The notes beneath the pieces are model-generated. The model ran no database searches and was not told the DNA's origin. It saw only the letters and a program-made list of their open reading frames with translations. The position numbers and the translations under genes are program-made. This document shows positions 9,908 to 31,300 of a stretch of 64,000 nt of DNA, piece by piece. This stretch comes from Cyanophora paradoxa CCMP329 (Eukaryota; Plantae; Glaucophyta). How positions within the stretch are numbered: position 1 is the stretch's first letter; the number at the start of each line of letters is the position of its first letter. Location of the stretch: NCBI GenBank assembly GCA_004431415.1, contig QPMI01000249.1, positions 25,079 through 89,078 on the forward strand, in the 5' to 3' direction.

Positions 9908-12900
9908 ATGCAGAGCCGCGCGAACGGGGGAGACCGGCAGGAGCGCAGGCTCTCCGTGCGGAGGCAGTCGCTCGGGGACGACGCGCAGCAGCAAGCGCTC
10001 TCCTCCCTCGAGGCCGCGATCGTTAACTCGCAGGTCGCTGCGCATTCCTTTGCGCACACGAGACCGAGACCGACGCGGGCGTTGCGTCCGCGCAGAGGCC
10101 GCTGCCGTCCGATTTCCTCGTCTCCGTAGTGAGCTAATCCGTTAAAAACAGAAATTATAAAGGCAGCGACTTACGTGCCCTAGTACAGACGACGCTGGGG
10201 CACGAGCCACTCGTCAGGATGGCTCTCGATGCCGGCACCAACCCCGACGCGCGGGACGCCGGCGGCCGCTCGGCGCTGGAAATGGCGATCCGGACGCGGC
10301 GAGCGGACCTCTGCGAGCTACTCCTCTCGCGCGGGGCCGACGCGCGCGCGCTCCTGCACGACGGCAGCGCGCCGCTCGCCGCCGCCTGCCTCCTCCTCTC
10401 GAACTCCGCGGCGGACGGGCCCGCGCACCGCTGCTTTCAGGCGCTCTTGGCGCACGGGGCGGACGCGGCGGCGCAGGGGACGGACGGGACGGCGGCGGTG
10501 CACGCGGCGGCGCTGCGGGGGCACGCCGGCGCGCTGCGGGAGCTGCTCCGGCGCGGGGCGCCCGCGGAGGCGCGGGACGGCCACGGCTGGACCGCGCTCA
10601 AGATCGCCGCCCGCCGCCTCCACGCCGACTGCCTCCGGCGCGCTGGCCCCGCCCCCCGCCGCGCCTCTCTCCTCTCATCCGCCGGTCGCCGCGGCGCGCA
10701 GGGCGCTGATTGAGGCGGGGGCGGACGCGGCGGCGCAGGACGACGAGGGATTCGTCGCCCTCCACAACGTCGCCGCCGAGCTCCCCGCCTGCGCCGCCGA
10801 TTCCGACCCCTCCCGTGCCCCGGCCCCGCACGCCCGCCCGCCCGCCCGCCCGCCGGCCCCGGCGACGCCGCCGGGGCCCCTCCGCAGCGGCCTTCGAGTG
10901 CCTGCGGCTGCTGGTGGAGCTCGGGCGCTCGCCTCTCGACGAGGCGACGCCGCCGGCGGCGCGGCGGCCCCGCCCCGGCGCCTCTGCCTCGCGCTCACTG
11001 CGCGGCGCATGCAGGGGACGACGGCGCTGATGAGCGCGGCGAGGCAGGGGAGCGTGCCCGGCGTGCGGCTGCTGCTGCGCGCCGGCGCCGACCCCGAGCG
11101 CCGGGACGCCGGCGGGTGGACCGCCCTCAAGATCGCCGCCGCCCGTGGCTCCCTCCCCGTCGTCCGGTCCGGCCCGCCCCTCCCCGCACCGCCCCGCCGG
11201 CCCCGCCGCCGGTCCCCGCCCGACGCGGGCGCGCATGCGCAGGGCGCTGCTGGATGCCGGGGCGACGCCGTGCGGAGAGGACGGGGAGGGGTTCCGCGCC
11301 CTCCACAACGCCTGCTGCCTGCTCGCGGCGGGGACGCCCCTGCCCGACGGCGGCGCAGGCGGCGCCGGGGCGGGGCCGGGGCCCGGGCGGAGACGGAGAG
11401 CGCGAGGCGGCGCGAGGCGGCGTGGGCGGCGGCGGCGGCGTGCGTGGCGGAGATGGCGATCGAGGACGCCGCCAAGGCCGCCGTGGCCGAGCTCGAGCGC
11501 GCCGCCCCCGCCGCCCCCGCCGCCGCCCCGCCGGCCCCCGCCCCGCACCCGCCCCAGCCGCCGCCCTCGCCCCGGCGGGCCAGCGGGGCGGGAGGCGAGG
11601 ACGCGCCGCTCGCCATCGTCCGCCTGCTCCTCTCGGCGTGCACGTGCCGCCACTGCGCCAACGCCCGCCTGCCCCGCGGGCCCGCCCCTCCGCCCCGCCC
11701 CGCCCCGCCCCGCGCCCCGCCGCTACGATCCGCCCAGCGCGCGCAGGACGACGCCGTTGATGCTGGCGGCGGGGCGGGGCCACGCGCCGGCCGTCTCGCT
11801 CCTGCTCCGCCACCGCGCCGACCCGGCCGCCCGCGACGAGGACGGCGACACGCCCCTCCTCCTTGCCCTCAAGGCCCGCCCCCGCCCCCGCGCCCTCTCG
11901 GCCCGGGCCGAGGTCCAGCTCGAGCAGGCGGGGGCCCCGCGGGACGCGGCGGTGCGCGACATCGCTCGGCTCCTCCTCTCGAGCCCCGTGCGTCCCCCGG
12001 CGCCTCTGCGGGCCTCGCGCTGCCCTCCGAGGGGCGGGGCGGGGGGGGCCAGGCAGGGCAGCGGGCGGGGCGGGGGGCCGGGGTGGACGCGCAGGACGCC
12101 CGCGGCTGGACGCCCCTCAAGCTCGCCGCCAAGAAGAACCTGCCCCTCGCCGCCCGGCCCGCCCCCGCCCCCTCCGCCCCGCCCTCCCGGCCTCGCTGAG
12201 GCGAGGGCGCCGCAGGGAGCTGCTGTGGGGCCACGGGGCGGACCCCGCCCTCGCCGACTGCGAGGGCTTCCTGCCCCTCCACAACGCCGCCGGCAACCTC
12301 CGCCCCTGCGCCCAGCTACTCCCCGCCTCCGGCCCCGCCCTGCAGGCCCGGGCGGCGGCGGCGGGGGCGGAGGGCGAGGGCGGTGAGGCGGCGTGGGCGA
12401 TCGTTCGAGACCTGATCGAGGCGGGGAGTCCCATCGACACTCCGGCGGTCCGCCCGGGCCCGGGGCTCGCCTCCGCGGCCGGCCGAGTCCGACGGGGCGG
12501 GCAGGGCGCGGAGACGGGGAGCTGGCCCCACGCGACGCCCCTCATCATGGCCGCCTCCCGCTGTGCGCCGCCCGCCTCACATCCCGGCACCCACCGCCTC
12601 GCACCCTCCCTGAGTCGCGGGCCGGACTGCAGCGCACGCCCCCGCCGTGGCGCTCCTCCTCGCCCGCGGCGCCAGCGTCCGCGCGGTGCCTGCAGCTTGA
12701 GCTTGAGCTTCCGGGCCCGGCCGGCGCCTCTTGCCTCTGAGGCGGGGGCGCAGGCGGACGCGGACGGGGACACGGCGCTGCACGGGGCGTGCGCGGGGAG
12801 CTCCTCGGCGGCCCTCGCCTCCCCGGCCCAGGCCCGCGCCGCCGAGCTCCTCCTCGCCGCCGGCGCCGACCCCGCCCTCCCCAACACGCAGTGCGCCCCG

Positions 12901-14917: not shown

Positions 14918-15901
14918 CCGCTGCAAGCGCGCAATAAATCGATAATTTTCTGTTCGAGCAGTCGCCGCCGGCCCGCCGGGCCGGCGGGCCTGCAGCAGGA
15001 GGCTAGAAAATAGCTATAGTACGCGCAGACCTAGGGCCTGGGGGCAGTCGGCGGGGGCGCCGGCAGCGAAGGGGTGGAGGAAGCTTTAAGGCGAGGGGCG
15101 AGGGGGGACCCCCGGGCCCCGGCGTGCCGCCTTGTACATGTACAGCTCCATGGCCAGCGCCCGCCGCTCGTCCGCCAGTTCCTCCGGCGCGTACGCGTGG
15201 CCCAGCGCTAGCTCCCCCGCCTCTGGATCTAGCCTAGTTGCGGCGAGCCGGGGATAGGGGGATCCATTGAGCTCGCAGCCTAGACTACCGAATTTACAAC
15301 ACGAGATGCACTCCAATTGCAACACTGTGACACGCGTACGTATACGGCGCTTTAAATTTGTGATTGGGCTCAAGGCGTCAACCACCCGCTCCAGCTCTGC
15401 GAAAAATTGTTTAATCCTCGAGCCCGTGATCGCGATTTCGATCTATCAAGATCAGGCTGACCCCGCGGTCGCGGGCCTCTTCGCGATCGGTTGCGAGGGG
15501 CGGAGGCCGCGGCAGCTTCGAATTCGCTTCGCGGGGGGCCTCCGCGTCCAGCGCCTCCCACGGCCACTCCGCCTCCTCCTCCAGCGCCCGCCCCCGCGGC
15601 CGCTTCAGGTCCCGCGGCGCCTGCCGCTCGCGATCGTCGTCTGGTCCTCGCGATCGGGACGCCGAGGCGGCGGCGCGCATGCGCCCCGGCTCCGAACACC
15701 GATCCCGCGGCTGCGCTCGCACAGGAGCCCCGGCAGCAATATATATATATATATATCAATGGATTGATATTCGAATTCGAATTCGGCGTCGCAGTTCAAT
15801 TTCGGGGAAAATGCCAACATCGAACATCGTACCTTGCTTACAGTAGGAGGAACACTGAGCGGGGGGCCTGAAAATCTGATGAGGAATATTCTTTGTGGAC
15901 G

Positions 15902-16619
15902 TCATGATTGGGCACCGGTACCTTGGGCTCGCGGTCGGGGCGGGGACCAGTTCGGGGGCGTCCCTCCAGCCCAGGGGCCCGACAAATCGCGGAACCGGTC
16001 CGCGTTCAGCACCGACCTGCTCGGCGACGACTCGCGAGGCTCGAATGTGATTTGATTTCTTGTTCACGTTTGCGCATGGCAATATTCAATGCACCCGCAC
16101 TTCTCGACGCGTCCTCGTCCCCGGCCTTTCTGCGGATTCCATTTTCCCGCGCACAGCCTGCGCTTGTGAACAAGGATCTGCTCAGCGATCGCGAGGCATT
16201 TTACACGGCATGTAAGAGAAAGGGCATGAAATTAAACGTGGAAGCGCTCTCACCACTTCCCAGAATTAAAATCGTGGCTCAAATTCCCGCCGCATGAACA
16301 CCTCGGCGGAACGCCGAACTGCGGAAAAGATGCGATATCGACATGCATTCCGCGACTGGCGCGGGCGCGCTGCGCGTGCGCATGCGCACTGTGAGAGCGC
16401 TGGCGACCCTTTCTGCGAGCTCCTGCTTCGTCCCAGTTGTCTTCATTCCATTCTGTCTGCACTCGGAAGCTCGAGCTCGGCTGGCTGCGGAGAAACCGGT
16501 CCCGGCAAGCCGACACGCACGCACCTGAGCATCTCGCTGAGGTCCTTCGCGGATTTCTTCCCGGCCCACTCGCTCGCTTCCCGAAGCTTCGCGTCATCGG
16601 AGACGGCCCGCCCCGCCAT
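15902..16619 (-). CDS. Small standalone PADR1 (PARP1 Zn3)-like zinc-ribbon protein, about 5 exons
   Basis: Manual splicing gives MAGRAVSDDAKLREASEWAGKKSAKDLSEMLR|QNGMKTTGTKQELAERVASALT|FGVPPRCSCGGNLSHDFNSGKW|LCAGKWNPQKGRGRGRVEKCG..., resembling the PADR1 pattern (L..N.....G....L.RVA....FG....C..C.G.L......Y.C.G....W.KC). Confidence 0.6.
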
Positions 16620-16965
16620 GTAATATATATCCTCCAATTCTTCTCCTCGCGACCTCTCCTTCGCGCCTCGCACCGATTTCGCCTTTCGCTCCGATTTCGA
16701 ATTCGCGCCTCCCGCTCCGATTTCTCGCCTCGCTCTGCGGCCGATTTCGCGACTTGCAAAAATTGATTTGGAGAAGAAAAAGAGGAGAAAAGAGAAGGGG
16801 CGAGGAAGGGGATAGAAGAAGGGAAATTCGAAATGGATCGAGGAGAAGATTGAAGGAGAGAAAAATTCGAAGGATCCAGAGGCAGTGGTCTTCGCGATCG
16901 TGCTCCGCCCTTGACATGTACATGTGAGCAAAATTGCAAATTAAAACAATATCAATTGTTCAAGC

Positions 16966-17127
16966 CTCGAACCTATGTGAGCGTCAGCGTAGCATAGGGC
17001 AGTGTATGGCTGCCAAATAAAGGCAGCCTTGCTTACGCACATATGTACAAGGGGCGCACTTACAAGTTATAAGTGCGCCCCTGGGGTACAAGCCTCAGTC
17101 TTGCTTCGCAGCCAAGGCCTCTAAGCT
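16966..17127 (+). repeat. 162-nt structured leader, copy 1 (ends 6 nt before the gag ATG)
   Basis: Identical to 19015-19175 apart from one C in a homopolymer; contains several hairpins. Confidence 0.95.
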
Positions 17128-17133
17128 GAGGTC

Positions 17134-18221
17134 ATGGCTCGCTCGCGGAGGAGCCCATCGTGGGCCCCTCTGTTCGTAGTCGTCTTGACCATCATTCTGC
17201 TCGTCGCCTGTGCCGAGGCGGCGCAGAAACGCAAGTCAACGGCCACTGGTGCGCGCAAGTCGGCCAAACCCAAGACGGCGACGACCCCGCGCCCCAGGCC
17301 CGGAGGTCGTCATCTCGTCTTCAAGCTCCGGCCAACGACAGTGCGGAGGAGGAGCAGCCTGCACCTCCGCCGACGCGATCTCGCAAAGGCAAGGAGAAAG
17401 CCGTGTCGCCGGATCCGGACCAGCAGCAGTCCGACCCAGAAGATGAACCTGAGGACGACGTTGCCGTTAGACTGGCACAGCGTGAGCAGTTCGGTGGCGC
17501 CTACGACGAGGAAGAGCAAGTGGCTGCGCGCAACTTTCCGAACTTGGCGCAAGTGGATCCGGGCGCGGCTGGCCCGTCAACCGGCTTCACCCGTCACCTT
17601 CAAGGCCCTTATGCTGTACCCGCTGGCAACTCGACTGCCCCAACGTCGACCAAACCGGCAGCGGGTGCGCTTCCGCCAGCGTGGGCTGAGCTACTTCAGC
17701 GTGGGATAGATAGCGCGGTCATCAAGCTTCAAGAGCAGCAGCAGCAGCAGCTCGGCGAGCAGCAGAAAGACAACCATGAGGCTATGCAGCTCAAAAACCC
17801 GTGGCTTCGTGAGCTTGCCCTGCAGCTATCGCAGCTTAAGTTTCAGCTCAAGAGATGCTCTTCGTGCACTGCGTGCTACGATCACGTAAAGCAGAGCCTC
17901 AAAATCCTCGACGAGCTCCGGAAGCGGATCGACATTCGCGACAAGGGCGGCGACAAGCTTGCCGAGCGGCTGGCAGGTGTGCCAGAGGAGTATCGGGGCA
18001 CGGCTGCGGCGCTGGCGCACGCGCTCAACATTGCTGGCCCGGAGGCCGCCGGCGGGCGCCCGTATGTGCAGCACGCCAACCCGCGGCCCCAGCACCAGGG
18101 CCGCGATCGCCCGCCGTCGCAGCGCAACAGCGGGATGTGTTTCCGCTGCAACAAGCCCGGGCATGTCGTGAAGGATTGCCCGAACGAGCCGCGCCCCGGC
18201 TGGCGCGACCCCCCCAAGTAG
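17134..18221 (+). CDS. gag: Gag-like protein of the YR retroelement (one apparent frameshift at about 17285-17288)
   Basis: C-terminal CFRCNKPGHVVKDC (CX2CX4HX4C). The ATG-17134 frame joins the 17160 frame if one C is added to the CCCC run. Confidence 0.8.
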
Positions 18222-19014
18222 ACGTGCGCGCCCTTGTGTGGACGCGCAGTTTTCGTTTCGCATTTCGCTAGATACTAGTGTTTCGGTGTGTTCTTGCAAG
18301 CATAAGTATTGCTAGCATATGCAAGTGCAGTCTTCAGAAGATCTAGAGTGTGCGTGTATGCTTCCCTAAACATGCAATACATGTATTATGCTTCAAGGCT
18401 TCCATTTCATGTGATGGTGTGGCCGGGTGCGGCATTGTGGCCGGGTGCGGCATAGTCATTACCAGCCGTGGTGGCGCCGGCGTGCTGTGGCTTTATGCAT
18501 TGGTCCTGTGTGCATTTGCATGTGTTAACACTGTGAAGTGTGACTGTGAGTGTAGTCTACTTTTCTTTTCAATGCTAGTGGCATATATTGCCGTCTGGAT
18601 GACTCCAACCTGGCAGAGCCCCAGCTGACTCCCGGCAACTGACCTGTTTCCAGCACAGGTCAGGAGTGCTGCTGGCTGTCGAGCTCCTGGCCCCTCCGGC
18701 CTTCCCGTGTGTCGCTATCGCATACTGGGCGCTCTGAAATTAACCTAGTGCATTTTGCAGGTGAGGAGTACACAAGGGTACGAAGATTCCATGATGCCAA
18801 CTGTTCCCGCTGATATCGCAGGTTGGCGCATTCATCCAGAAAGTCCATGCCTGTGCAAATGTGTTGTGGCACTGTGGGTGCATTGTGGCACTGTGTGTGC
18901 ATGTGAGCTCAAGACTTGAACCAACAAGCACATTGACACGCTCACTCTTATATTCTTCATGACAAGACATGTTGTGCTTAGCTTGCTGTAAGCAAGGCTG
19001 CCGTGGCAGCCATA

Positions 19015-19175
19015 CTCGAACCTATGTGAGCGTCAGCGTAGCATAGGGCAGTGTATGGCTGCCAAATAAAGGCAGCCTTGCTTACGCACATATGTACAAG
19101 GGGCGCACTTACAAGTTATAAGTGCGCCCTGGGGTACAAGCCTCAGTCTTGCTTCGCAGCCAAGGCCTCTAAGCT
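19015..19175 (+). repeat. 161-nt structured leader, copy 2 (upstream of pol)
   Basis: Direct repeat of 16966-17127. Confidence 0.95.
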
Positions 19176-19243
19176 TCTTCCCGTTCGCGTGTCACCATCT
19201 TCAAGCCAGCGGCTGCATGGACCATCAGCTGTAGCAGTGCTAG

Positions 19244-21208
19244 ATGGGCACCGCGATAATTGGGCATGTCTGCCAATGCAAGGCCTCACCTCACTTTGCA
19301 GGAGGCTTTGTTGCATCCTGCATTCAAGCTGCAGTCCAACAGTGGAGAGCGATTGGAGCCAATGATGTCGTGCTCAACTGGATCTTGCGTGGTTTCCCTT
19401 TGTCAGGAGCGAGGCGGCTGCCAGCAGAGCGCCGGGCCAACCACAAGTCTGCGGCTGTGGACCATCAGGACTTTGTGAGAACCGAAATTCAGAAGCTTTT
19501 GCGCACGGGAGCGATCAGAGAAGTTGAAGAAGCTCAAGTGAACATTGTCTGCTCACTGTCTGTGGTGCCCAAGAAGACTGGATCCAAGTTGCGGCTCATC
19601 TGGGATGGCCGGCCTACCAATAAAGGCCTTCCGGACATCCCCTTCAAGTATGAGACTCTTGAGCATGTTGCAGCCATGCTGCGCCAAGGCTGGTACATGT
19701 TCACTATTGACCTTGAATCTGGATACCACCACGTGCCAGTCTCGCCGCAAGACTGGCGGAACATGGGCTTTGAGTTTGACAGCAAATTCTATGTGTACAC
19801 AGTTTTGCCCTTCGGCCTCAAGCACTCACCGTTTGCATTCGTCAAGATCATGCGACAAGTGGTCAACTACTTCCGCCGCTTTGGCATCTTCGTGGTGAAC
19901 TATGTTGACGACTGGTGGTTTGCTGCTCCAACCTACGAGAAGGCCTGTGAATTGCGGGATTTCGTCCTCAAAACATTTGCTGCCCTCAAGCTTGTGGTCA
20001 ACAGCAAATCTGAGCTCACCCCAGCACAGTCGGTGGCTTTCTTGGGCTTCATAGTGGACTCCGCCCGCATGTTGTTTGAAGTACCCCAAGACAAGCTTGG
20101 TCGTCTGCTTGCTTTGATCAAAGGGCTTCTGAAGAAAAAGAAATCAGCATCTGCACGTGAAATGGCCAAGGTCGCCGGCACCCTTGTGTCCATGGCACGG
20201 GGCTTGGCTCCAGCTCGCATCAAGACCAGGTCCCTCTTTCGATACATCAATGTTGTGGCAAGAGAATGGCATTGGAATCATCCAGTGGAGCTCACCAATG
20301 AGACTCGTCGGGAACTTGAGTGGTGGCTGGCCAACATCCACCGATACAATGGCCGCTGCCCTATTCGGCCTGAAAGGCTCCTTGTGTTGACTACGGATGC
20401 AAGCCATGTTGGTGCAGGAGCCTGGATCACTACCCGAATTGGTGATGCTCAACCTGTGGCTTGGGAGCTTGAGCCTGCCCCATTCCAGTGCCTGTGGAAC
20501 CAAGAAGAAGCTCAGCAAATTTCGTCGTGGCGCGAGTTAATGGCAGTGCTTCGCGCTATGCAGCACTATCAAGGTTTATTGCGCAATCAGAACATCTTAG
20601 TTCGCTCGGACAACACAGTGACTGTGGCCTACATCAACAATGGTGGCGGAAGACATGAATACCTTTGCCGAGTTGCAGCAGCAATTTGGGATATTGCTCT
20701 GCTCAATTGCATCAGCATTGAAGCAGAACACATTCCTGGTGTTGACAATGAGTGGTCCGATGCTTTGAGTCGCTACTTTTACCCCGCCGACTACTCGTTG
20801 AAACCTGGATATTTTGCCATGGTCAGTCGGACATTTGGACCTTTTGATATTGATCGTATGGCCTCATCAGCCAACACTCACCTAAATCGATACTTTTCCA
20901 TTGATTTGAATGATCGACATGCTGAAGGATATGATTGCTTTACAGCAACCTGGCGTGGTGCTCGTAATTACGTCTTTCCGGACCCAAATTTCCTCTTGCA
21001 CCTTGTGTCACATGTCCGCCAGTGTAGGGCCTCGGCAGTTTTTATTGTCCCTCAGTGGCCCTCAGCTCCATGGTGGCCACAGTTGCAGCTTGCCTTGCGT
21101 GCACCTGCAATGGTGCTCGGCCCAGCATATGACGTGTGCTATCGCGGGCCTCGCTCGGCACAGTTACCTTCCTGGATTCTTGTTGCTCTTTATGTGTCGT
21201 GGGAGTAG
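19244..21208 (+). CDS. pol: DIRS-type Pol: reverse transcriptase + RNase H + DNA N6-adenine methyltransferase-like domain (654 aa, intact)
   Basis: RT: IDLESGYHH, LPFGL, YVDD, FLGF. RH: TDAS, RELMAV, SDN, HIPGVDNEWSDALSR. MT: DIDRMAS..N, DCF...W, YVFPDP, VPQWPSAPWW. Confidence 0.95.
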   Translation: MGTAIIGHVCQCKASPHFAGGFVASCIQAAVQQWRAIGANDVVLNWILRGFPLSGARRLPAERRANHKSAAVDHQDFVRTEIQKLLRTGAIREVEEAQVNIVCSLSVVPKKTGSKLRLIWDGRPTNKGLPDIPFKYETLEHVAAMLRQGWYMFTIDLESGYHHVPVSPQDWRNMGFEFDSKFYVYTVLPFGLKHSPFAFVKIMRQVVNYFRRFGIFVVNYVDDWWFAAPTYEKACELRDFVLKTFAALKLVVNSKSELTPAQSVAFLGFIVDSARMLFEVPQDKLGRLLALIKGLLKKKKSASAREMAKVAGTLVSMARGLAPARIKTRSLFRYINVVAREWHWNHPVELTNETRRELEWWLANIHRYNGRCPIRPERLLVLTTDASHVGAGAWITTRIGDAQPVAWELEPAPFQCLWNQEEAQQISSWRELMAVLRAMQHYQGLLRNQNILVRSDNTVTVAYINNGGGRHEYLCRVAAAIWDIALLNCISIEAEHIPGVDNEWSDALSRYFYPADYSLKPGYFAMVSRTFGPFDIDRMASSANTHLNRYFSIDLNDRHAEGYDCFTATWRGARNYVFPDPNFLLHLVSHVRQCRASAVFIVPQWPSAPWWPQLQLALRAPAMVLGPAYDVCYRGPRSAQLPSWILVALYVSWE

Positions 21209-21773
21209 ATTGCAGGCTCTTGCTGCAGAATTCAACTCCTGCTCATCTCTGCTCAGCTTACTTTGTCCAGCAACAGGGATAGAAAGCTTGAGTGGGGGGC
21301 TTTAAAAAGAAGAAGAAGAAATGTAGTCTGACATACCCTTGACTCTGGTGATGCAGGTGCTCGTCTGGGGGTGAGCAAATGCAGTAGTAGGCAACATCCT
21401 CTGCCTTGTCTGATGTAGCAGAGCAGAGTGACACTGGTCAATTGCTGCGCTCGAGGACATCAGCTAGCGCACGCTGCAGAGTGAGTCTTGCGGACATAGA
21501 ATGATTGAACATTAGTGATCAATTGTTGATCAATTATTCATCAAAAGATATCAATGGTTGGCACTAACAATGGCTTAAAGATGACTGAAGGCATAGTAAA
21601 CAATGGGCATTGCTAACACACATTGAAAGCGGCTAAGCAAAGCCGCTCGAGCGGCTAGGGAACAAGCCGCTCAGCAAGTTACACAGCTTGCCCTCGCTTG
21701 TGAGCGAGGGAGACAAGCGCCGACAGCACAGCAAAGGCGCACAACTGCGAAGCAAGACTCTAAGACTAGACAA

Positions 21774-22773
21774 TCAACTACTGCGCCGAGTACGCGCGAC
21801 TTGCTGCCGACATGACTGCAGCGAAGCTGACGGGCCAGCGTAACGAGCACCAGGCCTAGCCATGAGCGCAGCCAAGGGCGGGCGCTCAGCAGAATCGATA
21901 TAGCGTCGGTAGACCGCTGACAACAAAGACCAGCGACCAACCGCTTGAACAAGCTCTTCAGGCACGCCCGCCGCAGCCAGAGCAGTAGCTCCACCGCGAC
22001 GCAAGCCATGAGGTGTGATACCAGTGGCGTCCAAGCCCGCCGCGTCAAATGCGAACCGGAGAACATAGGCCACGGTCTGAGCTGACAGAGAACGAGCTGC
22101 GTCCCGAAGCTGCCCAAAAAGAGGTGCGCCCGGATCCGCGAGCGCTACAGTCCGCAAGTAGGTTCGAAACCAGAACACCGGACAGATGACCGACTCTGGG
22201 ACAGCGCCCAAGACAACTTGCGCGCCTTGGCGACGACGATCGGTCTTGGAACCGGCAATGAAGAGCACGACGCGATCCGCGCGGATGGACACATCTTGCC
22301 GCCGGAGTGCCACGATTTCGCCACGCCGCAACAGGCCAAAGAAACCGGTAAGCAACATCACAAGGGCGCGAAGGAGCTTGTTTGAGGGGGAACGAGCGTA
22401 GGTACGAGCAATCGCCTCCAGGTGGACGGACGTGACCAATGCAGATTGCTTTGCTGGTTTTCCACAAAGTCGGGCGATTCCTTGCAATGTTTGCAGCACA
22501 AGGGGTGAGCAAATGCAGTAGTAGGCAACATCCTCTGCCTTGTCTGATGTAGCAGAGCAGAGTGACACTGGTCAATTGCTGAGAGACCGTACTCTTCATC
22601 AGCAAGAGCACCAGCAGTGTTGCGACGCCAGAAGCTGTTGGTGGCCAGGCTGGAATGCAGTGAACCGCGCAATGGCCTTCATAGAGGACGACCCAGCGGG
22701 CGTAGAGGCTTTGGGTTCGCTCGCTCACAGAGTTTGTTCTGTAGAAAGTGACCCGGTTGAGCAGATCAGCCAT
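21774..22773 (-). CDS. Tyrosine recombinase of the retroelement (two apparent frameshifts, near 22610 and 22502)
   Basis: Catalytic set LRRGE (R), SKTD (K), HGLRRGG (HxxR), GRW, YRRY (Y). The N-terminus is spread over three frames: MADLLNRV.../LADEEYGLSAIDQCHSALL.../PLVLQTLQGIAR. Confidence 0.9.
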
Positions 22774-22929
22774 ACGAGCACCTGCATCACCAGAGTCAAG
22801 GGTATGTCAGACTACATTTCTTCTTCTTCTTTTTAAAGCCCCCACTCAAGCTTTCTATCCCTGTTGCTGGACAAAGTAAGCTGAGCAGAGATGAGCAGGA
22901 GTTGAATTCTGCAGCAAGAGCCTGCAATC

Positions 22930-23798
22930 TACTCCCACGACACATAAAGAGCAACAAGAATCCAGGAAGGTAACTGTGCCGAGCGAGGCCCGCGATAGCA
23001 CACGTCATATGCTGGGCGAGCACCATTGCAGGTGCACGCAAGGCAAGCTGCAACTGTGGCCACCATGGAGCTGAGGGCCACTGAGGGACAATAAAAACTG
23101 CCGAGGCCCTACACTGGCGGACATGTGACACAAGGTGCAAGAGGAAATTTGGGTCCGGAAAGACGTAATTACGAGCACCACGCCAGGTTGCTGTAAAGCA
23201 ATCATATCCTTCAGCATGTCGATCATTCAAATCAATGGAAAAGTATCGATTTAGGTGAGTGTTGGCTGATGAGGCCATACGATCAATATCAAAAGGTCCA
23301 AATGTCCGACTGACCATGGCAAAATATCCAGGTTTCAACGAGTAGTCGGCGGGGTAAAAGTAGCGACTCAAAGCATCGGACCACTCATTGTCAACACCAG
23401 GAATGTGTTCTGCTTCAATGCTGATGCAATTGAGCAGAGCAATATCCCAAATTGCTGCTGCAACTCGGCAAAGGTATTCATGTCTTCCGCCACCATTGTT
23501 GATGTAGGCCACAGTCACTGTGTTGTCCGAGCGAACTAAGATGTTCTGATTGCGCAATAAACCTTGATAGTGCTGCATAGCGCGAAGCACTGCCATTAAC
23601 TCGCGCCACGACGAAATTTGCTGAGCTTCTTCTTGGTTCCACAGGCACTGGAATGGGGCAGGCTCAAGCTCCCAAGCCACAGGTTGAGCATCACCAATTC
23701 GGGTAGTGATCCAGGCTCCTGCACCAACATGGCTTGCATCCGTAGTCAACACAAGGAGCCTTTCAGGCCGAATAGGGCAGCGGCCATTGTATCGGTGG
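22930..23798 (-). pseudogene. 5'-truncated duplicate of pol (RH-MT part only)
   Basis: Same protein sequence as the C-terminal half of 19244-21208; RT missing. Confidence 0.85.
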
Positions 23799-25305
23799 CT
23801 TTCAGCGTGAAGGAGGTTCTGCAGAGTCTGTCGCGCGCGCTCTGTTTCTCGGAGTCTGTCATGCGCGCGCGGCGCGGCGCGGGGGCTAGCGCTGGGGATC
23901 TAGATCTAGAGCTCCCGATCAATGAGCCCCGGCCCGTCGTGCCCGCGCGCAGAGCCTGTGTGACGACAGCCTTGTCCAGTTCGACAATTGCAAGATCGGG
24001 ATCAGTAACTACTACTGGCGAGCTCGAGCTGCTGTTCAGTTTGAATCTAGATGAATTTTTAGAGCGTACTTAATTGTGTAATTGGAAATTGAGCGCCGCA
24101 AGTATATAACGTTAACGCCGCGATTTATCTCAGGGCGTTTCCGAGCACGTGCACGGCGGGCCAGCAGCGCGCCTCGCGGATCAAGCAGCTCCAGGACTGC
24201 GTCGTGGCTGCCGAGGAGCAGAAGAAAACGCTCTCGGACCAGAAGGAGAAATCGCAGCACGGGAAGGAGGACTTGGTGCGTCGGAGGTCTCACAGCTGCA
24301 GCCGTATTTATTTAATTAGCTGCCGCGGCTGCGCCACTTTAATTTCGTGTGAGATTTGTATTAGATCTAAACGGAATTTGACATTTAGGCGGACCGCGCG
24401 GCGCTGCTGGAGCAGCTGGGCGCTAGAGCGCGAGGACGACGCCCTCTCTTCAGAGCTCGCGATCGCCCGGTGATCATGAGTCTCGCAGTTGCAATTGCTC
24501 GCGCGCGGATCCCGGAGCGCCAACGCGTACGGTACCTGTGCATGCGCACTAGACTCAATCAATGATTGCAATTGACTTGAATTTTGAAAAAGAGAAGAGT
24601 TTGAGGGCGCATTGAATTCGCAGGAATTTAAATTAGACGCGCCCGCGGCCGCGTTCGTGCGCGCAGCTACCGCGACTGCGATCCAGAGGTGCGCGATCGC
24701 GGTTTACATGTTTCAAGTTTATAATTACCGTAGTACTTTGAGTTCTTGGATTAATGAACCTGGTGCAGAGACGCAGACGACTGTACATGTCGCAACGGAG
24801 GCTGCAAATCGGTGCACGGGTGCGCATGCTTAAGTAATAATTCTTGGCCGACGCCCATGTACACGCGCACGTGCACGCGAAATCCGTGCGCAAGCACGTG
24901 CACGTGCGCGTGCACGTGCGCGCTGACAACGTTCTAGATCTAGATCTTCCGGCGAAGAAGCACTGCGCGGCGAAGCACAACATGGAGGCAAAGAAATTCA
25001 TGATCAGCCGGGCTTTCGACGTCCCTGAGGCGCGCCCAGAGGATTTGAAATTTCGCGATCGGATTCTATACCTTGTAACATCGATGGCTGATTATGACGC
25101 GTAAAGCGAAAAGGCCCTTTTCTCCTTTTCAAAAGCGAGAAGGCCCTTTTTCTCCTTTTTCCTCCTCTTCAACGTTAACAGGGGCATGCGCAGCGCACTG
25201 CACTGCACTCCATGACAACTCCATTGATGATTGCGAATCCATGCAGACAAATAAAAATGCCTCGATCAGCTGCTGCTGTTTAACAGTTACTACCCCCAAT
25301 TGTTG

Positions 25306-28300
25306 TCACTGAAGCTGGATATTGAACTGAACTGTAAACAAATACTGCCTTCTGTTATCCGCCTTGTCTCCGAGATTGATTTCCTGTCGCAAATTGGAAA
25401 TTCATGATCATAAGCAGTGATCAGACCTTGTATTACAGGCGTACGTACCTTTAGCGCCCATGTACCACCCGGGCTTCCGGCGGGCAGCGCGTGCGTGATG
25501 GTGTAGAGTTTCCACGCCCCGGGGTCGCCGACGAAGAAGCGGGTGTAGTAGTTCTCGTGGTAATGGTACTCGAACACGTCCCCGCCCGTCGGACTTAGCA
25601 GGCGGTACGAAACAGAGCCGAGGCCTGACCCGCCGTGATCCCGGGCCCAGTACCGGATGGTAACGTAAGTGCCTCCATTCGGATTGGTCGGGTCCGTGGG
25701 GGCCGCCTGGAACAACATTCAATACACCATGTAAAATCTTGTGCATTTATGGACACGCATACCGATACGGTGACGTTCGTCGCGTTGAGCTCCGGCTGGA
25801 ACAAATCGGCGACCGGCGTCGTGATGTTGATGTTGTATTGCTTATCTGGAGTGCGATACATCTCCGCCGCAGTGGTTTCCTGGGCGATGTTTGTGACTGT
25901 GTAGTGTTCGATAAAGTACGTCCTGAAAAATAATATTAGAGAGACGTCGACCGGGATTTAGCATTGCAATTGCAAGCTAATGATCACCCGTTGCGCTGGT
26001 AAGGATTGATATCGAAATCGACTGTGCAGTTATACGCGAACGCCTCGGTCAGTTTTACGCAGTACTGCTTTCCAACCTGCGCATGCAAAGCAAGAAAGAA
26101 ATTTTATGTATTAGTTATAGACGCGGACAGGGTCTGTCGCGTGCGAGATTAGTGTGTCTAATCGTGCGCGCGAGAAGCCCGTGCGGAGTGCAAGCTCGGC
26201 AGGGCGGGGTTTGGCGAGTGCTGCTGCTGTTAGCCACCGTGATGGTAGACTGAGGGTGTACCCGTCCAACTACGGCGTACCCCGACACACGCATACAAAT
26301 GACCGCGGCGCTCTAACTAGCCTAGGCGCCGTCGGCCTAGCAGCACGAAGGCTGCATACATCATCTAGAGCCCTAGCGGCTCACAATCGAGCATCCACTG
26401 TAAAGTCGGATGCGACAACTCCTCCTCTCGGATCCCGCGTCCGCGCGGGTCTACGCCCGAAGGCGAACAGAGAGAGGGCCGGGGAAGCCAGGAATTTGAT
26501 CGAGCCTGAGCTCTCTATACAACGCGACCCCGGCCGCTATACACAAACGCTCGGAGCTACCGGCTACTGCCGGGAATCGAAAAAAGGCTCCGAGCCACTC
26601 ACGGTCGGCGTCACCGGCTACTGCCGGGAATCGAAAAGACGCCGAGCCCGTCTACGTCCGGCGACTGCCGGGAATCGAAAAAGGCTGTCGCCCGGCGGGT
26701 GCCGGTACGACTCCAGCGTGTAGTGCCCAGGGGGCAAGGTCCAACTTCGGGCCGGCGGCCCAGGCAAACCCGCACGAGGCGAGCGGTACGGAGACAGAAG
26801 CCGAGGGGGGCCCTGCCCTCATCGCGCAGCACGTTAGCCGCAAGAGCGCACGCTGCAACAGCAACGCGGGGCGTAGCGTCGCGATGGCACTCGATAGCCC
26901 ACAGCAATATGCCCGTCCCAGCGCTTAGGGATATGCAGCCCGTCGTGCGACGCTGCCTAGGCACAAGCCGCGCTCCCACAGCAATTGCACGGCATCGAAT
27001 CGGGGGACCCCGACGGCGGTGGAGCTAGGGATCTCCAGGGCGAGGCTAGGCGCCGCCCACAGGGCTCAAACCACCGTCACTCGTGACGGCAGGTGCCCTG
27101 CCCGACCCGTGCATGCACGTCCATTGCGAGGGGGACGTGACCCTCCCAGGCGAACTGCCACCGAGCGTCCCCGGTGCAGAGCCCTGAATGGGGGAATTTT
27201 TGCGTCCCCAGTCGTCGTACCCGGAGTGGGATCCGGCGTAACGACCGCCTGCGTGTACCCCCACCGGCGCAAGGCGCGCCCTGGTACACCGCCAGGTCTT
27301 ACACGGAGGGGAATGGACATCCCCTGTCGCTGTACCCGAGGCAGAACTCGGCGTCACAGCCGCCTACCGACCCTTCTGCAGACGCGAGGCGCGTCCTAGG
27401 GCTCGGCTAGGTCTTCGGAGGGCCCCAGCCCTGTCACCGTGCCGAGCTGTGCTCAAGGCCACCGGCCGCCCGCGGCTCATCCAATTTGCCCGGGTCTTTA
27501 CAAGGGACTCGCACCCTGTCACCGCGCCGAGCTGTGCTCAAGGCTGACGGCCGCCCGCAGCCTCTTCTCTCGGCTCGGGGCTTTCGCGTTGTGCGCGGGG
27601 CTCTGAGGCCCGTCGATCCAGCCCGCCTCGGGCGATCTCTTGCTCAGCGCTGCCAAGGGGCTAGCGCAGCCGCTCTCCTGTCCTCACCCTCTCGCGGGGT
27701 CGGGACGCAGCTCAGAGCCGGCTTCCTAGATCTCATGATCAAGCCGCTCCCGCCGGAGCCGTTGGCACCGTGGCCGTGGCTTCCGGCCCGGACCACCCGC
27801 CGCCTTAACCGCCTTGGGGCCAGGCCGGCCACATGCGAGACGGAACTCATGGGTGTCCTTCTGGCGCCGCCTCAACAGGCCGGCCACCGGGTCTCCAAGC
27901 TCCTAGCTTGTGAGCAGGGCTCGCGGCCCGCCGCACCGCTCGGCCTGCAGCCGCAGCGTGCCGCCTGGGTGCCAACTTGTCGGGCAGTTCACCAGGTTTT
28001 TGGGCTGGGCACCAGGCCCTTGCCCCGCTAACGTTCGGTCCGGGCCCCGGAACCAACACGTGCGGCCTGGGCGCCAACTTGGCGGGCATCACCAGGACTT
28101 TAAGTTCAAGATAGTGCAAAGCTCTCGATGGAGCTGCTGGTGCCTGAACGCCTAGGGGCGAGCCAGGACTTTATTTCAGGGCTCGAGCTCTCGAGGGCAC
28201 TGTGTGCTCATGATCAAGCTCGCCCTTCATTGGAGCTTGGAAGCTCACGATTTTCGCAGGGGCTCACGGGCCGCCTGTCAAGCTCACGGCATGCCGTCAG

Positions 28301-31300
28301 GCGCTCGCCGGCCGCGGGGCCGGGCATCGTGCCTCTGGCATCGAGCTTCTCTTGAGAGTGCATCCCGAGCTCAAGGCTCCGCGGATTACATCTCATTTTG
28401 CAACGGCAGCTATGCCGCTCTCAGGCCGAGGAGCTCACGATCAGAGCATTAGCTGCCGCGAGGGCCAGCTACAGCGAGGGCCAGCCCTGGCCGCAAGGCC
28501 TGAGGCCACTTTCCTGGATTTCGCAAGGCCCGTGGACGCACTCAGCGACTGCAGTGCGCCGCGCGAAATCGCAGGCTTTCGACGAGAGAGTCTTGGAGGG
28601 ACTCCTCCTCTCGGAAAGACTGGTACCCGCTTGGGGTTTGCGATCTGATCTCGGCCACTGGCCACAGATCTAGATTGAGGCAAGCAGGAGGGCTCGCAAT
28701 TGCGGCGCCGGCCGCGGGCCTCTTTGCAGGCTTCAGCGAAAGAGGTACTCCTCCTCTCGGAAAGAGGGGCACCCCGATTGGGGCCCTCTTTCGCAAGTGC
28801 TATTTGATCTCGGCCAGCGGCCACAGATCCAAGCAAGCCGTGGGGCAGGAGGGCAAGCGGCAGCAATTGCACTGCTCGTGCAGCATGCATATGCCCGTGC
28901 TCACTCCTCCTCTCGGAAGACGTCGTCCCCGACGTCTGAAATCATGTACAAGTGTACAAATATACAGCCTGCTCAGAGGCAGGTATATTGGCCGCTTATT
29001 ACAGCGACACATGGGACTCTCGCAGGGGAGGCCCAGGCTCCGCGAAAAATTGAATCGCGGTTACGAGCAGGGCTGTTCTGGCGGCTGCCCAAGCCAGCCA
29101 GACCCTAGTGCAGCTGGTGCACGTGCTCACTCACGCTCCGCCGCAGGGCGCGCGGTCGGAGCCGCTGAGCTTGAGGGCGCAGGAAGCGCGGGGCGAGCAG
29201 CCCGTGTGGGGGGGTCGGAGCAGGCACTGTGGTGGTGCCCTGCCTCGCCACAGCGACCGCAGACTTCGTCTGGGTCCTGTTTTCCCTCATCGGACCAGTA
29301 CTCTTGCTCGTCGGCAGCATCCTCTTGGGATTGCTTTGGCCGATAGTACTGGCCGCGGCGCACCCAGGGGCGTACTGGGGCGAACGGGGTGCGCTTGGGG
29401 CACACATTTGCCCAATGACGCCGCGCCTCAACGGGGACGCTAGGGTCATCTGAGCACCCATAGCAGTCTGAGGGGGGGTACTCGGGGTACCCGAGCTCAG
29501 ACATGCGGCGCAGCACCTCCGCGACGGCAGCAGGCGAGCGGGACTGCACGGCCCAAGAGGACCCACGTGCTGAGATCGAGGGCTGGGCCCTGGGGTCGGC
29601 GTCCCGAGGCGCAGCAGGGCCAAGGGAGCTCGAGGACTCATCCTCGGCAAACTTTGCCTGCAGGATACGGGTCCGTTTTGCCTCTGGCGGCTGAGCAGCT
29701 GCCGGTGCAGGCGGGAACACGGCACGGCAGCCGTGGCGCGTGCACTGCTCGATGAAAATATCATCAAGCTCGAGCGGCGAGACAGCGCCGTCACGGGCAA
29801 GGAGGCGCTGCTGCAGCGCAGCGAGGAACTCGCGCATCGTGCGCTCGTTCTCTTTCGCGAAGCCGGCCATCCGAACCTCAAGGTTCTGATATTCCGGGTC
29901 CTTGCTCGTCGAGCGGGCCTCGAGCGCGATGCGCAGGCAATCCGCATAGTACGCAGCGAGCCGCTGGCCCGGCGGCAGCGTGTGCCGCACAAGGGGCATG
30001 ACCCAGTCATGCCACGAGCGGGGGTCCTCGCCCGTGTAGGGCTCAGTGAGGGCCCGGCAGGCCGCATGCGGGCGCAGCTTGTGAATCCACGCCGTGATCG
30101 TATCGAGCAGCCCGGGGGCACGCAAGTACGAGTCACGCACGGCCACGATCGTGGCCTCATCACGCACGCAGCTCTGCTGCAGAGCGAGAATATTGGCATC
30201 ATCCTCGGCAGACCGCAGGTTTGCCGGGACAAGCTCGAGACGAGCGAGCGTGGCGCGGTCACGCTCTAGGAGAGCAACCGAGGCCTCATAGAGGTCACGC
30301 TTGCGCTCGATCTCAGCGCGGAGAGCGCCGGGGCGGATTCGCCCAACGATCACTCCGGCTAGTGCCTCCGACTTTGAGTACTCCTGGCCACCGGCAGAAT
30401 CCGGGCCAAACAAGTACTTCGTCGGCAGGGCCGACTGGAAGTTCCGCACATCCTTCCGGAACCGGTCGCCATCGGCGAGGCGCGGATTCGCAGGCAGGAA
30501 CGCGATCCGCACGGGATCATCGTCCGCCGCAGCGGAGGCAGCAAGTTGCTGCACATGCAAAGCAGCACCAGCCTGGGCATGCACAGGCTCGATGTGCGCG
30601 AGGGCAGACAGCCGGCTTCGGACTTCAGAACTGATCAGTTCAGAAGAGTTTGACATGGTGTTCTCTTTGCAACGTAAAGCCGCAAGAACAAGATGCCAGG
30701 GAGAGCACTAGGCGCGGGATTTGATCTGCAGCTCGCTGCAGAATCCGGCGCGGAGATCTCGCGGTCACGCAAGAGCGCGACTCAGGGACACTTAGAGAGC
30801 TGCTCGCAGCAGTCTCCGTGGCACGGTTGCTCGCAACCGGCGATGGGACAGGCAATGATGAGACTCTCGAGAGAGAGCTCGGCGCGTGCGCTTCGGTCTG
30901 GGGATGACCCGAAGCCCGCGATAGGCACTAGAGACGTTTCCGGTGCACTACCGTCCAACCGCAAGCGGTACAGGGCGGCGCACTCAAACGCAAAGCAACC
31001 GTGGGGACGGCGCTCGCGCGGAAAGCAGGTCTCTGGCTCCAATAGACACTGGGCAAGGCGGCGCAGCGATGCGCGCTGCGCGGCGGGGCTGGGGAGAGCG
31101 ATACGGACTCAGACCCTTGAAGGTTCGATTCCGGCAGAATGGCGCCTGTCGCGTGCGAGATTAGTGTGTCTAATCGTGCGCGCGAGAAGCCCGTGCGGAG
31201 TGCAAGCTCGGCAGGGCGGGGTTTGGCGAGTGCTGCTGCTGTTAGCCACCGTGATGGTAGACTGAGGGTGTACCCGTCCAACTACGGCGTACCCCGACAC

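Follow-up and report, generated by a model that had tools for sequence, protein, structure and literature searches.

The DNA analysed here is a 64-kb stretch from Cyanophora paradoxa, hereafter the window, and it carries the genes of a retroelement with a tyrosine recombinase (YR). On the + strand, the locus opens with a 162-nt leader, A1 (16966-17127), which is followed by gag (17134-18221). A non-coding spacer with stops in all frames (18222-18983) leads to a segment of 31 nt (18984-19014), which abuts A2 (19015-19175), an internal copy of the leader. The pol gene (19244-21208) comes next, and it is followed by the pol-YR intergenic region (21209-21364), after which the ATG of the YR gene would be expected. 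The remaining features lie on the minus strand and consist of R2 (21368-21447), an 80-nt exact duplicate of a conserved YR coding stretch (R1, 22502-22581), a 3′UTR (21448-21773), the YR gene (21774-22773), and the RNase H and putative methyltransferase (MT) part of a 5′-truncated pol (22774-23798). An earlier note, made from the sequence alone, had called this locus a YR retroelement, and the domains agree with it: a gag with a CCHC knuckle, a pol with RT and RNase H, and a match to Phage_integrase. No integrase or protease domain was matched by any ORF of the window. With RT and RNase H present and a YR in place of a DDE integrase, the element belongs to the DIRS order.

The two leader copies form a direct repeat of 162 and 161 nt, 2,049 nt from start to start, and their sole difference is one C in the C-run at 17078. 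Such a repeat cannot be chance, and the 64-kb window holds no third copy. A1 ends at 17127, 6 nt before the gag ATG at 17134, while A2 ends at 19175, 68 nt before the pol ATG at 19244; these 68 nt contain one upstream ORF of 5 codons (ATG at 19217). Inside A1 are an AATAAA (17016), a TATAA motif (17068), and a palindrome (17052-17082) made of two perfectly matching 12-bp arms on either side of 7 nt. The leader is structured, having an RNA fold with z = -4.9 that was equalled by 0 of 200 shuffles. The earlier note's central observation, that an identical structured leader stands immediately 5′ of both gag and pol, with the repeat and spacings given above, is therefore upheld.

The N-terminus of the gag product is hydrophobic and resembles a signal anchor, and a CCHC zinc knuckle (Pfam zf-CCHC, E = 8.5e-6) lies at the C-terminus. 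The intact protein has 362 aa, as seen in gene models P0063 and P0070, and the copy in the window carries a 1-nt homopolymer frameshift near 17290-17300. The C. paradoxa gag cluster comprises 11 distinct sequences under about 19 EukProt accessions, and the window gag is 95% identical to the cluster's representative over 91% of its length. This is a young, multicopy DIRS-order family in Cyanophora paradoxa, and the near-identity of its copies suggests recent activity. On two other Cyanophora contigs, gene-model numbering places a pol-fragment model directly after a gag model (tig00020961 g16766/g16767, and the consecutive accessions P010053/P010054), so that gag lies next to pol at all three loci with any information. 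The A1-gag-A2-pol stretch was read at the DNA level at one of them, this window.

The pol gene is an intact ORF of 654 aa, composed of RT (RVT_1, E = 1.3e-18), RNase H and a putative methyltransferase-like region at the C-terminus. The RT_RNaseH matches are weak and fall just under the Pfam cut-offs. Past RNase H, pol extends for about 190 aa that are conserved with homologues carrying PF05869; a precomputed PF05869 hit is found in the more distant homologues P0008, P0012 and P0013, and among its closest relatives pol is conserved in its C-terminal third. In the window, the methyltransferase signal is a weak Dam match only, on the minus-copy ORF (E = 0.0032, 17.6 bits against a cut-off of 28.1). 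At E<=1e-30 there are 2,495 relatives.

The YR gene lies outside the range considered in the earlier note (16966-21208) and on the minus strand. Its domain was identified by Phage_integrase (E = 1.5e-12 on 21774-22568, minus strand); the gene reads in three frames, which implies two frameshifts within about 120 nt. Its own pol remnant lies immediately upstream in the same orientation, and the recombinase shares 43% identity with its counterpart downstream of pol in the related locus L005. The pol remnant is the inverted twin of segment 20338-21364, which recurs at 23798-22774 over about 1,030 nt with two homopolymer indels as the sole differences, one of which shifts the frame in the minus-copy pol. 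The + copy is interrupted at 21364|21365, exactly at the expected start of the YR ATG, and the second copy (23798 to 21448) is inverted, truncated at both its 5′ and 3′ ends, and carries the only YR of the locus. Given the inverted duplicate and the minus-strand YR, the locus is made of two partial copies placed tail to tail and is not one intact element. The 'pol-YR segment' of the earlier note, which had overlooked the inverted partial copy, is not one contiguous unit here. R2, at the junction of the two copies, is rearrangement filler and not a terminal repeat. Since the + copy was cut at 21364 and fused through this 80-nt YR fragment to a truncated copy, no terminal repeat B2 is present here; likewise, the 3′UTR of the minus copy ends before any B2. 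A 15-nt motif of A also occurs in this 3′UTR (21745-21759).

An arrangement of this kind could be the product of assembly, in which the joining of reads from near-identical copies created the inverted repeat, the A1/A2 pair, or the two together. The window probably belongs to the published C. paradoxa assembly, which was made from PacBio RSII reads with Canu and corrected with Quiver and Illumina data (PMC6704402). The duplicated segments are 100% identical apart from 1-nt homopolymer indels, and gag, YR and the minus-copy pol all have frameshifts of the homopolymer type. However, the inverted repeat has an asymmetric loop of 1.4 kb, unlike the palindromes left by missed adapters, and the reads are so much longer than a 162-nt repeat that it cannot mislead an overlap assembler. 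Furthermore, independent short-read assemblies of relatives, described below, point to a repeat upstream of pol. We regard an artefact as very unlikely.

Between the gag stop at 18221 and the pol ATG there are 1,022 nt, an unusually large separation in agreement with the distance of about 1 kb given in the earlier note, and each of the frames contains 9-14 stop codons. The borders of the module are clean: gag ends with its own stop, and an in-frame TAG closely precedes pol's own ATG. The spacer holds two short tandem duplications of 18-19 nt, and no remnants of pol or YR were found in it. The 31-nt segment that abuts A2 is the inverted complement of the interior of A (19049-19090), and the two form a hairpin that spans the junction (z = -6.9). 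The same kind of fold is found at the B1|A2 junctions of two related elements (z = -4.8 in L001 and -3.6 in L010), whereas the junction of A1 with its flank lacks a comparable fold (z = -1.8). To judge by this pairing, the 31-nt segment is B1-like. A second copy, either of 18984-19014 or of the spacer end, is not found in the 64-kb window; the defining B pair is putative, since both copies of the element lack the 3′ end.

Elements of the PAT group are defined by split direct repeats of the form A1...B1A2...B2, in which the position of B1A2 varies (PMC4157794). The pair 16966-17127 and 19015-19175, with A1 5′-terminal and A2 internal, corresponds to the A1/A2 direct pair of this type, and its size and position just before gag agree with relatives L001 and L010; in relatives, repeat A measures 147-160 nt and lies just 5′ of gag. 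The 162-nt repeat is most likely the 'A' unit of PAT-like split direct repeats. In L001, A1 (6964-7119) accompanies a gag with its ATG at 7067, and the internal module, B1 (11633-11674) with A2 (11673-11826), lies after YR and is followed by B2 (12047-12088). In L010, A1 (5054-5200) precedes gag (5258) and pol (to 8208), and B1 (8799-8950) and A2 (8949-9095) lie between pol and YR (9362 onward), with B2 at 10716-10867, so that one leader precedes both gag and YR. L011 has the canonical split-repeat layout. These differing sites of B1A2 indicate that the internal module moves within the group.

The closest relatives of this pol were found on contigs that start a short distance upstream of the gene: 62 nt in L003 (79% identity), 165 nt in L004 (50%), 107 nt in L012, and about 270 nt in L005 (47%, assembled at k = 141). 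No gag or CCHC knuckle is present on these four contigs. The L004 and L012 contigs begin at the same homologous base, and that of L012 spans pol and YR and then 496 nt more; in L004, L005 and L012, pol and then YR lie on one strand. More distant relatives in which gag abuts pol (L002, L011) have contigs that continue through gag-pol. A repeat ending shortly before pol in this clade would produce such a pattern of breakpoints, which is indirect evidence for it. L005 also has a 19-7-19 palindrome at a similar place upstream of pol.

We propose, with a probability of about 0.6, that the locus derives from one PAT-like element in which B1A2 has moved to a position between gag and pol, and that A2 may double as an internal promoter. 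The native layout would be A1-gag-spacer-B1A2-68 nt-pol (RT/RNaseH/MT)-YR-3′UTR-B2. In B1|A2 the element would keep a copy of the junction B2|A1 of the circle, in the role of the internal complementary region of DIRS-1. Transcripts that run from inside A1 to inside B2 would lack the extremities of the element; the internal junction would allow reverse transcription to rebuild the ends, and the recombinase would then insert the circular DNA. Because a full leader copy and 1 kb of all-frame stops lie between gag and pol, A2 is probably also the internal promoter and 5′UTR of a pol-YR mRNA, and its AATAAA may terminate the gag mRNA. Both of these roles, raised in the earlier note as an internal promoter/terminator that gives separate gag and pol mRNAs, are plausible from the position of A2 and from its TATAA and AATAAA motifs.

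The locus is demonstrably rearranged, joined to an inverted partial copy by an 80-nt templated fragment, and a further rearrangement could have made the A1/A2 pair. A gag-only deletion derivative ending in B could stand head to tail with a gag-less copy starting with A, or unequal recombination or templated repair could have duplicated A at this locus only; normal members of the family would then contain just one leader, with their internal B1A2 at another site. A head-to-tail B2|A1 junction of two elements would look identical to an internal B1|A2 and would yield the same hairpin. A title cited in PMC4157794 (reference 17) reports a preference of DIRS-1 for insertion into DIRS-1 sequence, and gag abuts or overlaps pol in the more distant relatives L001 and L002. 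However, both ORFs are complete, with clean borders and a spacer without coding remnants, an outcome that random deletions seldom leave. The four closest relatives also lack gag directly 5′ of pol, with contigs that break there, and a gag model adjoins a pol model on the two other Cyanophora contigs. Moreover, each of the two supposed elements would miss the internal junction copy that split-repeat elements require. A one-off origin of this kind is in our judgement unlikely.

A different account, related to the separately mobilised gag and pol-YR segments of the earlier note, treats an A-gag-spacer cassette and an A-pol-YR unit as mobile separately while sharing a leader. The cassette would move at A by site-specific recombination through YR, with the 12-7-12 palindrome as a lox/FRT-like site, leaving A on both flanks of gag. 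Indeed, A is identical on either side of gag, like att or lox sites after integration of a circle, and the perfect inverted repeat in A has a similarly placed counterpart in L005. GC3 is 0.71-0.79 in gag, compared with 0.55 in pol and 0.57 in YR; in relatives, gag and pol are nearly alike in L001 and L010, and the gap is much smaller in L002. This contrast hints at a separate history for the gag module. The published annotation also has about 19 gag models and only two short pol fragments, but the simplest explanation of this imbalance is that gene prediction is biased against ORFs of low GC such as pol and YR. We know of no recombination site for any DIRS-order recombinase. No isolated A-gag-spacer unit or gag-less unit was seen, gag adjoins pol at all three informative loci, including a pol fragment on each of the two further contigs, and the B1-A hairpin agrees with the split-repeat logic of relatives. 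Separate mobility thus has no direct support, and we consider it improbable. In a broader form, that of a modular or two-component retroelement, A would be an LTR-like cassette border, each copy having its own mRNA, with the gag cassette exchangeable by the recombinase at the palindrome; A1 would drive gag, whose message would terminate at the AATAAA of A2, and A2 would drive pol-YR. Two mRNAs would then replace the frameshift or overlap that sets the gag:pol ratio in other YR retroelements. This form is doubtful.

To our knowledge, the replication of split-repeat YR retrotransposons is known from models only, and the sole experimental system is DIRS-1, which has inverted repeats. If B1A2 does lie between gag and pol, the internal junction module can occupy any ORF boundary, as among related pols it either follows YR or separates pol from YR, and here it would separate gag from pol. 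With 1 kb of stops in between, pol is untranslatable from a joint gag-pol RNA, which makes the element a natural test of an internal A as a promoter. The host is a culturable glaucophyte with a published genome and RNA-seq, and our searches of the Cyanophora literature brought up no account of YR retroelements in glaucophytes. For annotation, about 19 'genes' of the C. paradoxa proteome can be flagged as retroelement gag.

Comparison with known systems shows that the element shares features with several of them. As in LTR retrotransposons and retroviruses, a repeat with a TATA-like motif and an AATAAA lies upstream of coding sequence, and the downstream gene needs a second mRNA. Unlike in LTR elements, the repeats flank gag only, neither a protease nor a DDE integrase is present, and integration would be by a tyrosine recombinase; on these grounds an LTR retrotransposon was rejected. 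The 64-kb window contains no tRNA gene. In DIRS-1 of Dictyostelium, the internal complementary region (ICR) has been shown experimentally to be essential for retrotransposition (PMC7192593). The likeness proposed here is that ends absent from the transcript are rebuilt from a copy of the joined termini kept inside the element. However, the terminal repeats of DIRS-1 are inverted, with an 88-nt ICR beside the right one, while the repeats here are direct. Membership of the DIRS1-like group was rejected, the only long inverted repeat (20338-21364 / 22774-23798) being duplicated RNaseH/MT coding sequence. Ngaro and VIPER elements have no MT-like domain and have internal repeats after YR; here about 190 aa follow RNase H, conserved with PF05869 homologues, and the repeat lies 5′ of pol, so membership of that group was also rejected.

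By layout and domains, the element is most likely PAT-like, with PAT, Kangaroo and Toc3 known here from published descriptions. It resembles the canonical layout of PAT-like, Toc3, echinoderm Pat1 and Ngaro elements (A1-ORFs-B1A2B2) in having an A of similar size (147-162 nt) immediately 5′ of gag and, as in L001, a 3′ end of the putative B that pairs with the interior of A across the junction. In that layout, by contrast, gag is adjacent to pol or overlaps it, and all ORFs precede the internal repeat. Nematode Pat1 and Kangaroo carry B1A2 between MT and YR, and in Toc3 and echinoderm Pat1 the module follows YR (PMC4157794); 'other configurations exist' among split-repeat layouts (PMC8969392). 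The earlier note's statement that the locus fits neither known layout was too strong, since the published positions of B1A2 vary, both kinds are also seen in L001 and L010, and a B1-like segment abuts A2. The closest likeness in layout is to nematode Pat1 and Kangaroo (A1-gag-pol-B1A2-YR-B2), which share gag, a pol with RT, RNase H and a region that in the window is putatively MT-like, YR, an A1 just before gag, and a B1A2 inside the coding part, so that, as in L010, a leader precedes a second ORF. The window gag has a CCHC knuckle, whereas Kangaroo and Toc are reported without one (PMC4157794). The YR of Kangaroo is natively inverted relative to pol, whereas here, as in L004, L005 and L012, it is collinear with pol, and Kangaroo-type membership was rejected because YR is collinear with its own pol remnant. 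Unlike in nematode Pat1 and Kangaroo, the module in the window lies one ORF further upstream, with pol and YR between A2 and the predicted B2. This family would thus represent a new layout variant, departing from known layouts in the site of the internal module, which would be at the gag/pol boundary and not at the pol/YR boundary or after YR.

The element in this stretch of the Cyanophora paradoxa genome is most likely a PAT-like tyrosine recombinase (YR) retrotransposon. The leader found before both of its first two genes is best read as the known internal module of the split direct repeats, in a new position and in a damaged copy. The first open reading frame, gag (17134-18221, plus strand), has a CCHC zinc knuckle at its end, and the second, pol (19244-21208, plus strand), gave RVT_1 and RNase H-like matches. 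Self-comparison of the window agrees with the earlier note, which had placed the same leader (A) before gag and pol. Segment 16966-17127 (A1) recurs as a direct repeat at 19015-19175 (A2), and the only difference between the two copies is one C in the C-run at 17078. A1 ends 6 nt before the ATG at 17134 and A2 ends 68 nt before the ATG at 19244; a third copy of A is absent from the 64-kb window. The distance of about 1 kb noted between the two genes is also correct, with 1,022 nt from the gag stop to the pol ATG.

RNA folding of leader A gave a z of -4.9 versus shuffled sequence. At 17052-17082 the leader has an inverted repeat whose 12-bp arms match perfectly and are separated by 7 nt (12-7-12), and it also includes an AATAAA at 17016 and a TATAA at 17068. 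Rfam returned sub-threshold hairpin matches and nothing more, and no tRNA genes were found in the window. GC-rich palindromes with a 7-nt spacer, about 110-190 nt 5' of pol, can be seen in the window (12-7-12 at 19099-19129, as at 17052-17082 in A1) and in L005, the contig of a relative with a 47%-identical pol (19-7-19 at 87-131). Their sequences are unrelated; as a candidate function, the palindrome upstream of pol may bind a protein or serve in priming. A 15-mer of A, AGTCTTGCTTCGCAG (17097-17111 and 19145-19159, close to the 3' end of the leader), occurs again at 21745-21759 on the minus strand, in sense orientation and 15 nt past the YR stop described below (blast E 0.008 within the window). 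This may be a coincidence, or the transcript may be terminally redundant over a short length.

Both gag and pol are complete and their ends are clean. From the gag stop to the pol ATG, each frame has 9-14 stops, and no hidden coding remnants were found in the spacer (18222-18983), which is without coding debris. Since 1 kb of stops is unbridgeable by frameshifting or read-through, pol must be read from a separate message or by internal initiation. A2, a full leader copy including the TATAA, would be the obvious candidate promoter for pol, and its AATAAA could end the gag mRNA. The intact Gag protein has 362 amino acids, and the copy in the window is shifted in frame by 1 nt near 17290; frameshifted genes were searched solely as separate pieces. 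The N-terminus of Gag (17134-17230; also in the gene models P0063 and P0070) begins with a basic stretch, after which come about 18 hydrophobic residues (MARSRRSPSWAPLFVVVLTIILLVACAEAAQ...), and it is kept in every full-length gene model of the Cyanophora gag cluster. It looks like a signal peptide or a membrane anchor, which is an unusual start for a retroelement Gag.

The third-position GC content (GC3) of gag is 0.71-0.79, far above that of pol (0.55) and of YR (0.57, over 21774-22490); the gag module looks nearer in composition to the GC-rich host than pol and YR do. In more distant relatives, gag and pol have about the same GC3 (L001 and L010, difference of at most 0.03) or a much smaller gap (L002, 0.06). 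This difference, together with the position of A, which lies on both sides of gag, as recombination sites do around an integrated circle, favors a bipartite or cassette system. It is the most interesting alternative, but an improbable one: no free-standing unit was seen, and gag adjoins pol wherever this can be judged.

The number of gene models was also considered in this respect. The window gag, across 91% of its length, has 95% identity to the representative of a cluster of 11 distinct C. paradoxa gag sequences, which sit under about 19 EukProt accessions on at least 10 contigs. In EukProt EP00741 (gene models P0062-P0072, P0161 and P0238, for gag and pol fragments together), about 19 annotated C. 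paradoxa 'genes' are the gag of this element, and in about half of these the same homopolymer frameshift is bypassed by an artificial intron. Cyanophora pol is represented by only two gene models, fragments of 125 amino acids that are 99% identical to the window pol, and no full-length pol or YR model was found among those of EP00741, probably because the GC of pol and YR is far below that of host genes and they were skipped by gene prediction. Moreover, both pol fragments are annotated on other contigs, each directly after a gag model (tig00020961 g16766/g16767; accessions P010053/P010054). The excess of gag over pol models is accordingly weakened as support for a bipartite system.

The element was called a YR retroelement in the earlier note, and a YR domain was indeed found, though not within 16966-21208. 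It is located at 21774-22773 on the minus strand (Phage_integrase, E 1.5e-12) and belongs to a second, 5'-truncated copy. Segment 20338-21364, about 1,030 nt of RNase H and methyltransferase-like (MT) coding sequence, recurs inverted at 23798-22774, and the inverted pair encloses an asymmetric 1.4-kb loop that contains YR. The YR start codon comes directly after the RNase H/MT remnant on the minus strand, as in the contigs L004, L005 and L012 of relatives, where pol and YR are collinear; therefore YR is not natively inverted, and a Kangaroo-like inversion was rejected. The plus-strand copy ends at 21364|21365, where the YR ATG is expected. This junction is followed by two unassigned bases, by R2 (21368-21447, a reversed YR copy) and then by the 3'UTR of the minus-strand copy (21448-21773). 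R2 is an exact 80-nt copy of R1 (22502-22581). Because R1 encodes a part of YR that is also conserved in L004 and L005, R2 is coding sequence out of place, and readings of the 80-nt repeat as the 'B' repeat, as an insertion into YR or as a YR intron were rejected. The YR of the minus-strand copy is spread over three reading frames. Among fold-back, inversion and nested insertion, no single-step origin of the inverted junction was derived, and its appearance suggests a rearrangement through replication or repair, with templated insertion.

The duplicated segments in the window differ solely by 1-nt homopolymer indels; therefore the copies are essentially identical, and errors in the consensus may account for some of the frameshifts. 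PacBio RSII reads and Canu were used for the published C. paradoxa assembly (PMC6704402), and a misassembly as the source of the second leader is very unlikely for a repeat of 162 nt.

The element lies within an island of 52-58% GC (about 15.75-26.2 kb), with surroundings of 70-80% GC. The flanks of the composite, 15751-16965 and 23799-26133, have a GC of 0.44-0.63 versus 0.7-0.8 in the host background, and they contain simple repeats such as (AT)9 (15739) and an array of the GCACGT type (24851-24922); therefore the island around the element may be rich in repeats. Just right of the island there is a perfect 284-nt direct repeat (26134-26417 and 31146-31429, 5,012 nt apart), which could stem from a local duplication or bound another element as its terminal repeats. 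Pfam gave no match for the flanking ORFs, including the protein-like ORF 25290-25718 (minus strand), or for those between the 284-nt repeats, which reach 509 amino acids.

The window pol has 2,495 relatives at E<=1e-30, the closest being P0001, P0002, P0003 and P0004 with identities of 79%, 50%, 47% and 39%, respectively. A database look-up found no record of the exact window pol, and no match was obtained by a metagenome scan with the pol alignment, with an exact 27-mer from A, or by a viral-contig scan for further copies, all in collections other than the Cyanophora genome. Short peptides that clustered with gag were rejected as further copies, being from unrelated bacterial contigs.

PAT-group elements are defined by split direct repeats, A1...B1A2...B2, with the internal B1A2 after YR or between MT and YR (PMC4157794), and 'other configurations exist' (PMC8969392). 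Layouts were read from relatives of the window pol with contigs that are long enough. In L001 (pol identity 33%), A1 (6964-7119) lies around the gag ATG, gag overlaps pol, and YR is followed by B1 (11633-11674), A2 (11673-11826) and B2 (12047-12088); L011 (34%) has the same type of layout. In L010 (32%), A1 (5054-5200), gag and pol are followed by B1 (8799-8950), A2 (8949-9095), YR from 9362, and B2 (10716-10867), so one leader sequence stands before both gag and YR. The YR of L010 is 37% identical to that of L011. It is therefore usual in this group that an A repeat of about 150-160 nt stands just before gag and recurs internally, 5' of a later ORF.

Directly 5' of A2, 31 nt (18984-19014) match the interior of A (19049-19090) as its inverted complement, and the two form a long hairpin across the junction. 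The fold z-score of this B1|A2 junction is -6.9, compared with -4.8 in L001, -3.6 in L010 and -1.8 for the flank|A1 junction of the window. The 3' end of B pairs with A in L001 and L010 in the same way, hence the sequence before A2 behaves like B1. A search for B2 with the spacer, the 165 nt 5' of A2 and the minus-strand 3'UTR (blastn and blastn-short against the element and the whole window) gave only chance 8-12-mers and the complement internal to A. A B2|A1 junction would be indistinguishable from an internal B1|A2, and the locus is already rearranged, which leaves some room for a one-off head-to-tail pair of defective copies; this explanation is unlikely, though less so than a bipartite system.

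Evidence for gag-A2-pol as a family trait is provided by the clean ORF ends, by the two Cyanophora gag/pol model pairs and by the contig starts of relatives. The short-read contigs of the four closest relatives start 62 nt (L003), 165 nt (L004), 107 nt (L012) and about 270 nt (L005, k=141 assembly) 5' of pol, and no gag or zinc knuckle was found upstream of pol on them. L004 and L012 have the same homologous first base; L005 extends 141 nt beyond it, and these nucleotides hold the 19-7-19 palindrome in about the same place as the 12-7-12 of A. L012 continues through pol, YR and 496 nt more, and the contigs of L002 and L011, where gag abuts pol, traverse both genes. De Bruijn assemblies break at repeat borders, so these starts are the pattern predicted by a repeat that ends shortly before pol.

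The locus thus most likely derives from one split-repeat element with the order A1 - gag - spacer - B1A2 - pol - YR - 3'UTR - B2, in which B2 is predicted and absent from the window. By analogy with the PAT/Ngaro replication model (PMC6681497) and with DIRS-1, the ICR of which is experimentally essential (PMC7192593), the transcript would be incomplete at its ends, and the B2|A1 junction of the circle would be restored with the internal B1|A2 as template, before the recombinase inserts the circle. The A1/A2 pair of the window matches the pattern of the group, with its internal copy one ORF further upstream than in L010.
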